From: Paragordius varius
Lineage: Eukaryota; Animalia; Nematomorpha
Direction of reading: 5' to 3'
Length of the DNA stretch: 64,000 bases
NCBI GenBank assembly: GCA_964247055.1
Contig: OZ176051.1
Span: 10,416,001-10,480,000, forward strand
Part shown: positions 60,171-63,345 of the stretch, piece by piece
Layout of the letters: each line of letters starts with the position of its first letter
How positions within the stretch are numbered: position 1 is the stretch's first letter
The notes under the pieces: model-generated
What the model saw: the letters and a program-made list of their open reading frames with translations, nothing else
Databases searched by the model: none
What the model was told of the DNA's origin: nothing
Position numbers and translations under genes: made by a program

Positions 60171-60269
60171 TATAACTTTTATAAAGATAAACTACAAATT
60201 TTTATTACTAAACTATAGCTATATTGTAAAGTAAAAAGTTGATTATTTTGGATAAAAAATCTATTCAAA

Positions 60270-61186
60270 TCAAACGCAGGAATCATTGCTACATCTTTTC
60301 CCTCTTGGACAGCACAATTGTTTCCCACCATGGCAACAAGTGGCATGCATCATTTCACAACATTCAAAACGGGTTTCAAGGTTAAATTCTTTCTCCAAAA
60401 CACTGTATAACGCCTCTAAATTTTGTTCTTTTAAAGTCAAAACTTGCTCCATTACGGAATGCAAGTCTCCAAAGCCAATGATTGTTTCATTCATATTGGC
60501 ATACGTTTTACAACAGGTTTGTTGAGGTTTACAGCGTGTATGATGATCTATATTGAATAAAATATATTGCATATACTTAACGATATATTATTTTTAAAAC
60601 CTTTTGGCCAAAAATTACATTTAAAAATTAAAAAAATAGAAAGATCAAAATAATCCCAAAATTTTGGTGTAAAATTTTTGAACCCAAAAAAATGGTATAT
60701 GTCTGATTCCCTACCAAGAATTATATTAAATCTGAATCTAACAGTCGACGCATCGTTGGCTCGGGTCGGTCGGTTATAAAGTTTATCAGTGAAATTTTAT
60801 ATGTTAAACATTTGGCAGGCCACAAACCGCGTAACTTACCCAACCTAGATTAGGTAAGATTAAGCAAAATGGGAAAATAAAAAAAAAAATACCATTTATA
60901 ATTTTTTCGTCAAGGGCAAAATAATCTGCAAACTATATAACTACTTGGTTAAAATACCTGGACATCTATTATCATATTTGATCCCTAAAGCTTGATCTAC
61001 TTTTGTATTGAAGTCAACTTCAAAACTATCGTTGTGTTTATGGTGTGGATCCTTTCAAATGAATACATAATTATTTTCACATATTAATAAATCAGTTTAA
61101 AGATTCGTATAAAATATTATTACCATACATGTCCAGGACGAATTAATTATAATTAAAAATATAATTGGAGTTAAAAGTTTTAGCAT
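60270..61186 (-). CDS. GRN: Secreted single-domain granulin-like protein (~144 aa)
   Basis: Exons 61186-61124 (MLKLLTPIIFLIIINSSWTCM, signal-peptide-like), 61051-60958 (...YDNRCP) and 60547-60270, all GT-AG and in phase. Module C-X6-C-X5-CC-X49-CC-X6-CC-X6-CCP-X4-C-X4-C retains all 12 granulin cysteines. Confidence 0.8.
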
Positions 61187-62089
61187 CGGTCTAATAGAAC
61201 GTTGTAAACCAATGAGTTAGTAATTATGGTAACAATTTTATGTTTAAAGAAAAAATGGTTATGAATAAATTTGAATTTTTATCCTTTATATACAATTCTG
61301 ACTCCTGCCAAATAAAAGACGCAAAATCATGGTGTGGTTTATTAAATATAAAAAATATCCACAAGATTACATTAAATAATTTGATGCGTTTATCTTAAAT
61401 AATTTATATGAATGGGATTTAATGTAAAATAAGCACCATATGTTTTCCTAAAAATTTTGTCTCTTAATCTAGGTTTACAGATGCACCCAAAAATCTAATA
61501 TTCTATCCTATAATCATCAATCATGTTCAAAATTTTATATTTGAGATAAATTTTTTGTATAGCTTTATGATTATTAAAAAATATCATTTTAAATTTTTTG
61601 TTATTTTTAAGATATGGTCATATCTAAATTATATTTTTCTCGATGTATGGCATTTAATATCTTATAATTTAAAAATGTGAATAACTATTTTATTGGTTTT
61701 AAAATTTATGACCAACTACATTCAGGTGTTTTAGAATTGGTAACAAAATTAACAACAGCAGGACCTAACCTATGGGCATAATGGAGGTCGTGAATTGGTC
61801 TTTTCACTTTTCTATCATATAAAACCATAACTTTTTTGTGGGGTAAAAATTTGAGGTGGGTGCCTTGTTCAGTATAGAGATTTTAATGGCTTACGCTAGT
61901 CAAACCCAATAAAGTAAACCTTCTAACATTTAATTGGTCCTTGCTTTGGAATAATAAGAAATGTATTACAGATTCAATGTTTTCAATTTTACTCGAGTGT
62001 TATCTATCATACTATCATGAAAATAAATAAAACATAACATCAATACTCTTTATAAAGGGGTTTAAAATGACTTCTCTTCACTTGTTTCT

Positions 62090-63345
62090 TCCCCATCCTA
62101 TTTCCTTCAATTCACTTCATCGGTCTTCCTTTTTTCCTTTTCTCTGTAACTTTCCCAAATATCAAATCTTTCTCAAGAGATTTACTTCTTAAAATGTGCC
62201 CTATGGCAAATTTTCCTATTATTATAGCTCCCATTAAGTGACTCTTAATATTTAATTTTTCTCTAATTGTTTCATTCTTAACCTTGTCGGACCACCTTAT
62301 ATTAAACATTTTCCTCTAACACCACATTTCAAATAGCAATTCTTTTTATTTATGTTTAATGGCTATGCATTTCATTACTCTCACTTTAGTTATCATAGAG
62401 ATATCTTTACTTTCCCATAATTTGGCCAACTTTTTCGCAGCTTAGTTCTCTAATGCTATGCGGCTTTTATTATATGGCGTGTAAAAGCCGTTGATATCTA
62501 CAGAGAGCTTAATAATAGGATTTCATTTACTACTTCTACTGTGGTGTCATCTATGACTATATTAGGTTTATTATTTGATGATCTTTTACTTTCTTCTCTT
62601 ACTAACCTTATCATATTATTGAACCTCCTACATTATCTGAGATCATCGTCGTGTCATCTCTGAATCTTCCAGTCTTCCAAGTTCTTCCTTTTCTGTTTGT
62701 GGAGTCTGGAATTCAATTTTTTAACCATATTTAATTCCCCTCTATTCCTAGCTCTTTTTCTTTCTTCAATTATTTTTATACATGTTTTAATTATTCCACT
62801 GGGTTTCTGAGTGATATTATCTGTCTTATTAATAATTAAAATTTATTGGTCACTTCTATCTTATATCTTAAAGGGATTCGTTCTACGTTGTATTTGCATT
62901 CTTTACCCTTCTTCCCGGATTTTATCATGCGCGTTTTAATTGTTGTTATTAATGCTTGGTCGCTTGAGCAGTTACAACATTTCTCGGTATTAGAATTTAT
63001 GAAAAACTTTTTTCATTTTTGTTGTCCTATAAAATAATTTATTTTGTTTTTCCCACAAGGGGGGTTCAGGTGATACCCGTCTTTTATGTTGTTTATACCC
63101 ATGTATTCACAACAAACATTTGATTAATCATACTGAGTCAATCGTTAACCAGCTTCGTTTCTTAAGGCTAATCCGTGTTTTCTTACAATCATGTCGTACT
63201 ATTGATTTCCAGCCTTACTATTCCAATCATCACCTATTATAATCATATTCGTTTTCGGTAAGGAGTTTATTAAGTCTTGAAGCTGTTCATAAAATGCATC
63301 TATTTTTTTCTTGTTCGGAGTCCGTGGAATACACAATGATTCTCA
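62090..63345 (-). mobile_element. Decayed RTE-clade LINE: endonuclease fragment joined to the ORF C-terminus
   Basis: 63345-63080 reads EKIDAFYEQLQDLINSLPKTNMIIIGDDWNSK (APE endonuclease); 62560-62110 reads VIDDTTVEVVNE..., ISMITKVRV, FNIRWSDKVKNETIREKL...GHILRSKSLEKDLIFGKVTEKRKKGRP. Confidence 0.8.

Follow-up and report, generated by a model that had tools for sequence, protein, structure and literature searches.

The granulin module is among the most compact and length-invariant of cystine folds, with eight residues between its first and second CC pairs (CC1 and CC2) in 85% of 804 modules that we surveyed. A granulin gene in the 64,000-nt stretch of horsehair-worm DNA analysed here (the window) appears to place 49 residues in the same interval, and the question that it raises is whether this loop is really translated and, if so, what it represents. 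The first-pass annotation had answered with a granulin scaffold that presents a novel helical module. We think it probable, on balance, that the loop is instead genuine and translated: an expansion at a hairpin tip, specific to the lineage, that is common to three secreted single-module granulins and evolves almost freely. The two other granulin genes of the same genome carry equally long, unrelated loops, which points to a fast-evolving expansion within the lineage rather than to a one-off helical module.

The window consists of eukaryotic DNA with a very high AT content (GC 23-33% per 2 kb) and belongs to a genome of 110 Mb with a GC content of 26%. Rereading of the DNA and translation of the exons bore out the annotated three-exon granulin gene on the minus strand (61186-60270), in its coordinates as well as in its exon boundaries; the parts given below all lie on that strand. 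Exon 1 (61124-61186) consists of the ATG and 20 mostly hydrophobic codons, presumed to encode a signal peptide, and ends at a phase 0 donor (GTAATA). It is followed by a 72-nt intron with a GC content of 0.17 (intron 1, 61052-61123) and by exon 2 (60958-61051), whose 31 codons plus one base encode a spacer and Cys1-Pro, terminating as Cys-Pro-G at a phase 1 donor. Intron 2 (60548-60957; 410 nt, GC 0.28) has the acceptor TCAATATAG, and the first two bases of exon 3 (60270-60547) complete the split Asp codon (G|AT). This last exon encodes Cys2 to Cys12: its start (60510-60547) holds the remainder of the Asp codon, Cys2, and the first CC pair (C-X5-CC), the 49-residue loop from CC1 to CC2 occupies 60363-60509, and the granulin core CC-X6-CC-X6-CC-X5-C-X4-C-Val fills 60273-60362. 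The TGA stop (60270-60272) is immediately 3' of Cys12-Val. A TATA-like word, TATATAAAGG (61283-61292), lies 97 nt before the ATG, though such a word is weak evidence where the genome has 26% GC; one of the paralogues described below, L002, has a similar word (TATATAAGG) ca. 75 nt 5' of its own ATG. An AATAAA that is a candidate polyadenylation signal (60201-60206) is found 64 nt past the stop. A thirteenth Cys is residue 20 of the protein, where the presumed signal peptide ends, and may or may not be removed along with that peptide. On the plus strand, a 79-amino acid frame at 60286-60525 is open antisense to exon 3 and most likely owes its openness to the coding frame opposite.

Together, the translations of exons 2 and 3 give a single granulin module with all 12 Cys, as had been annotated, in the spacing C-X6-C-X5-CC-X49-CC-X6-CC-X6-CC-X5-C-X4-C. 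Every one of these Cys aligns with a Cys of the paralogues, in the order C, C, CC, CC, CC, CC, C, C. The two exons were used separately in searches and folds. The Pfam granulin profile, PF00396, which had been suggested as a check, recognises the core after the loop at 25.7 bits against a gathering cut-off of 20.9, with the match limited to profile positions 7-41 of 42, and in a six-frame search of the genome the same profile gave 27.1 bits. Compared with the known granulin/epithelin module (PF00396; structures 2JYE and 6CKU), the window's protein shares the order of the 12 Cys, the Thr that precedes the first CC, and the P-x-G that follows the last one. It differs in having 49 residues where the canonical CC-X8-CC spacing has eight (7-12 in practice), and its last loop has four residues rather than five or six. 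The CC3-CC4 loop has six residues, HGGKQL, in place of the canonical x-D-x-x-H; the absence of this signature had been noticed correctly, whereas the paralogues keep it as TDGVH and SDHIH. The CCP after the second CC pair and the AVCC are likewise missing. By its sequence, then, the window's gene is a single-module member of the granulin family with a hydrophobic N-terminus.

Searches of the 110-Mb genome with PF00396, with a profile of the family, and with an ordinary two-module granulin protein revealed three granulin loci only, and none of these queries found a multi-module progranulin. The paralogues are L001 (G000:C1, ca. 12.157 Mb), with a loop of 53 amino acids, and L002 (G000:C2, ca. 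11.421 Mb), with a loop of 44; the latter is ca. 0.94 Mb from the window's gene on the same contig. All three loci have the same three-exon layout, with a hydrophobic N-terminus encoded by exon 1, a Cys1-Pro-G|GT junction that divides an Asp codon, and an exon 3 that spans Cys2 to Cys12. The recurrence of the same junctions in three diverged paralogues validates the gene model of the window's granulin. In each of the three, the interval between CC1 and CC2 is open, in frame, and free of Cys, and the long loop stands at the same place. Thus, what had been presented as an insertion in one gene is not a single-gene peculiarity.

The paralogues have canonical cores, with 55-56 bits to the Pfam profile, and C-terminal tails of 40-55 residues past Cys12 (L002 1384-1500; L001 1342-1500). 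Close to their ends both tails have the motif D-I-x-x-x-I...E; in the window's granulin the tail is missing. In the L002 tail, AlphaFold predicts a helix at residues 108-124, in a block with a pLDDT of roughly 50-76. The signal-peptide exon of L001 is joined to exon 2 by a 29-nt GT..AG micro-intron (L009 2451-2479, minus strand; G000:C1, ca. 12159850-12159878), and read-through of this intron meets a TAA. Intron 2 of L001 (2.28 kb) contains a 118-codon open frame (L001 2722-3075, minus strand) with a GIY-YIG match (PF01541, 26.3 bits), which probably represents a mobile-element fragment, perhaps of Penelope-like type. Sequence comparison makes the window's granulin the most diverged of the three: L001 and L002 are identical at 27 of 41 core positions and 12 of 43 loop positions, and the window's copy matches either of them at 14-17 of ca. 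40 in the core and at 4-5 of 42-49 in the loop.

Such divergence could mean that the window's granulin is a duplicate in decay or without function, in which an odd loop and lost signature residues would mean nothing. Its Pfam score of only 25.7 bits, the loss of CCP, AVCC and D-x-x-H together, and the missing C-terminal tail all fit that reading, as does the six-residue CC3-CC4 loop, a length found in 4 of the 811 modules in the best 150 of 978 profile matches described below (790 of the 811 have five). The gene nonetheless retains, intact, its start codon, the two splice junctions, the Asp codon divided between exons, all of the 12 Cys, and the P-x-G that follows the final CC; its ca. 143 codons are free of stops and frameshifts in a genome of 26% GC. 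The TATA-like and AATAAA words also stand at sensible distances. Moreover, only 3-6 of the 28-29 aligned non-Cys positions of the core are identical to those of the paralogues, although 12 of 12 Cys are kept; retention of the Cys while the rest of the core is nearly saturated argues for selection on the disulfide frame. We therefore regard decay as an unlikely account of the window's copy.

That the loop belongs to the protein is suggested in the first place by its DNA. Translation confirmed that it is open at 60509-60363 and has one N-E-T sequon, and the description of its composition as exon-like also held: its GC content is 0.34, against 0.17 and 0.28 in the two introns and 0.20-0.25 in the flanks, and the loops of the three genes range from 0.32 to 0.36. 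GC is uneven among the codon positions in the loops of the window's gene (0.43/0.22/0.37) and L001 (0.40/0.25/0.32) and nearly flat in that of L002 (0.39/0.34/0.36). At the lengths of these loops (132-159 nt), the chance of a random open frame in this window is 5-7% each and ca. 2e-4 jointly, a figure reached before any demand that the lengths preserve the frame. Judged from these features, the whole loop is most likely translated.

Alternatively, the greater part of the loop could be an in-frame intron that has gone unrecognised, so that the mature loop would have ca. 15 residues or fewer. A candidate had been pointed out in the window at 60504-60403 (GTATGC...TACAG, 102 nt, minus strand), and it is indeed present and in frame, with a plausible donor. 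In L001, one weak in-frame candidate (GTTACC...AAAAAG) would on splicing leave exactly eight residues, and the 29-nt intron of the same gene adds some further plausibility. Yet the window's candidate would leave 15 residues and not eight, and its acceptor, GAGGCGTTATACAG, is not preceded by a T-rich tract, unlike the five acceptors that we read in the family; at the corresponding point both paralogues lack a comparable candidate. None in L002 would spare both Cys of the CC pair. The three genes therefore share no cryptic intron, since a GT..AG intron that keeps the CC pairs does not recur at one position in all of them. Three separate introns would have no reason to be stop-free and multiples of three in length, with ca. 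2e-4 for openness alone, and the exon-like GC content of the loops also speaks against them. Splicing out of the window's candidate is accordingly judged improbable. Micro-introns of 18-30 nt were considered as well: the only in-frame GT..AG of that size in the window's loop is of 30 nt (CAA|GTTTTG...TTTAGAG) and would leave 39 residues, so that micro-introns would shorten the loop immaterially.

A loop of this length is far beyond the normal range, as had been proposed. A HMMER profile search of 1.84 billion representative sequences gave 978 matches, the best 150 of which were surveyed. Within these 150, which are all multi-module progranulins that outscore their single-module relatives and so bias the survey to multi-module proteins, the CC1-CC2 loop has eight amino acids in 686 of 804 complete modules and 3-12 in 802 of them. 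The observation that would have made the loop commonplace, namely many granulins with similarly long loops, was not made: the two outliers among the 804 modules have 27 and 29 amino acids, and one of them (P0135) is from the nematode Ditylenchus dipsaci. A word-index search with a three-sequence profile retrieved 18 small granulin proteins, in which the loop is 7-9 amino acids long, and the same kind of protein search with the exon 3 of the window's gene or of L002 alone gave no match. An exact look-up of the 100-amino acid open reading frame in public assemblies, from which records of this genome may be absent, likewise gave none. The ESM Atlas, queried with L002, gave ordinary granulin clusters only (scores 0.86-0.88). 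Our literature search on granulin in Nematomorpha found no paper.

At the level of sequence, the three loops have little in common. BLASTP of the loops alone detected no similarity among them, the window's loop matched no Pfam family, and the net charge is -5 in the window's loop and +5 and +6 in those of L001 and L002. Two of the loops, those of L001 and L002, contain dibasic sites, which are absent from the window's. The amphipathic Leu/Glu periodicity reported for the window's loop did not exceed that of shuffled sequences (mean helical moment, p = 0.07; maximum, p = 0.30).

AlphaFold models were built from a three-sequence alignment for exon 3 alone, without Cys1 or the signal peptide, and are of low confidence, with a mean pLDDT of 61.8 for the window's exon 3 and 56.3 for that of L002. 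In the former, the short strands of the core reach 69-79, and the loop is drawn as two helices (exon 3 residues 25-37 and 43-54) with a short turn between them and a pLDDT of 43-56; the L002 loop has no secondary structure and a pLDDT of ca. 33. In both models the strands that flank the loop are paired (E10-15 with E58-63 in the window's, E10-14 with E54-58 in L002), and this pairing of the pre-loop with the post-loop strand places the loop at the tip of a hairpin. Foldseek put the zebrafish granulin AaE (6CKU) first for the window's model, at an E value of 0.9 only. The family profile matched human granulin A (2JYE) with 41 bits over two collinear segments, and in the profile-to-PDB alignment the segment at the start of exon 3 falls on granulin A residues 11-21. 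On these models, a helix-turn-helix is possible for the window's loop, and the loops in general look like a variable, largely flexible excursion at the hairpin tip.

These data bear on the proposal made for the window's gene at the outset, that the granulin stack is a scaffold for the display of a specific helical binding module, a new ligand or an effector that acts on an arthropod host in the manner of Ov-GRN-1. Two predicted helices joined by a short turn, and a hydrophobic N-terminus, are what such a protein might show, and secreted single granulins of parasitic flatworms act on host cells (PMC2749447, PMC4618121). However, the helices have a pLDDT of 43-56 and an amphipathicity not above that of shuffles, the L002 loop is predicted to be disordered, and the three loops have no common sequence, opposite charges, and, in the window's case, no Pfam family. 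With loops so dissimilar and with no helix in that of L002, the defined "novel helical module" is unsupported, as is its role as a ligand or as an effector in the host, and we would give this reading, drawn by analogy with the flatworm proteins, little chance.

Other origins can be dealt with briefly. A transposon or repeat is ruled out as the source of the loops, the DNA of which is single-copy in the genome in each of the three genes, and a remnant of two fused modules was set aside, since 12 Cys would have had to be lost and the spacer would have to be longer. The boundary between the exons for the N-half and the C-half of granulin falls after the second CC pair. An intron exonised at this classical boundary was rejected because its place is not within the CC1-CC2 loop.

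We thus return to the lineage-specific expansion of a translated loop, for which the following course would account for the observations. In the common ancestor of the three paralogues, the loop between Cys4 and Cys5 would have grown from the usual eight residues to roughly 45-50, at the tip of the β-hairpin that, in the AlphaFold models, is built by the strands around CC1 and CC2. In the structure of carp granulin-1, the ends of this loop are clamped by the disulfide ladder, through Cys2-Cys5 and Cys4-Cys7. With its ends clamped in this way, a long excursion should leave the hairpin stack undisturbed. Since the expansion, the sequence and charge of the loop would have drifted freely, while its openness and approximate length were kept. 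The loop would then be a variable, mostly flexible surface appendage and the cystine stack the conserved functional scaffold; that of the window's protein would be acidic, probably N-glycosylated, and possibly a helix-turn-helix.

Among known systems, the closest comparison is with the two paralogues themselves, which share with the window's gene the three exons, the hydrophobic exon 1, the Cys1-Pro followed by a split Asp, and the long open loop, and differ from it in their canonical cores, their basic loops of unrelated sequence, and their C-terminal tails. Granulin modules are divided into N-type and C-type exons (PMC4527844). The single-module gene of Caenorhabditis elegans, CCD72453, has the exon pattern (s)-(sn)-(n)c-t (PMC4527844; Palfree, Bennett and Bateman, 2015) and, compared by its published description, resembles the window's gene in having one module, splicing within the N-half, and no intron at the boundary between the halves; in the window's gene, intron 2 follows Cys1-Pro and exon 3 carries Cys2-Cys12. 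CCD72453 is given as a typical 12-Cys module, and no long loops are reported in that paper (PMC4527844). Plant granulin modules, which are fused to papain-like cysteine proteases, have a longer loop before the second CC pair (PMC4527844, supplement), but this is of ca. 13 residues and includes an extra Cys, whereas the loops of the family described here are of 44-53 residues and Cys-free. Ov-GRN-1 of the liver fluke and the other secreted helminth granulins (PMC2749447, PMC4618121) are like the window's protein in being small, secreted, single-module worm granulins, the secretion of the window's protein being a prediction; no indication of a long loop in those proteins was met.

That every granulin gene of this genome has a Cys-free loop of 44-53 residues, placed by the models at a hairpin tip, would mark where the fold accepts large insertions, and such tolerance would be useful in granulin scaffold engineering and in folding studies. 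The apparent lack of an ordinary progranulin is relevant to the question of how this phylum provides for the lysosomal and growth-factor functions of that protein. If the organism is a host-manipulating parasite, secreted granulins with variable loops would, by conjecture, be reasonable effector candidates. A wider idea, which we consider a long shot, is that horsehair worms swapped canonical progranulin for single-module granulins in which the loop is a hypervariable display, serving either as a host-directed binding surface or as a segment excised in the manner of a C-peptide to yield two-chain, disulfide-linked granulins.

Elsewhere in the window, the minus strand at 62112-62309 has a 65-amino acid open reading frame (RWSDKVKNETIREKL...KRKKGRPMK), which we take to recall the C-terminal end of the ORF2 proteins of non-LTR retrotransposons.
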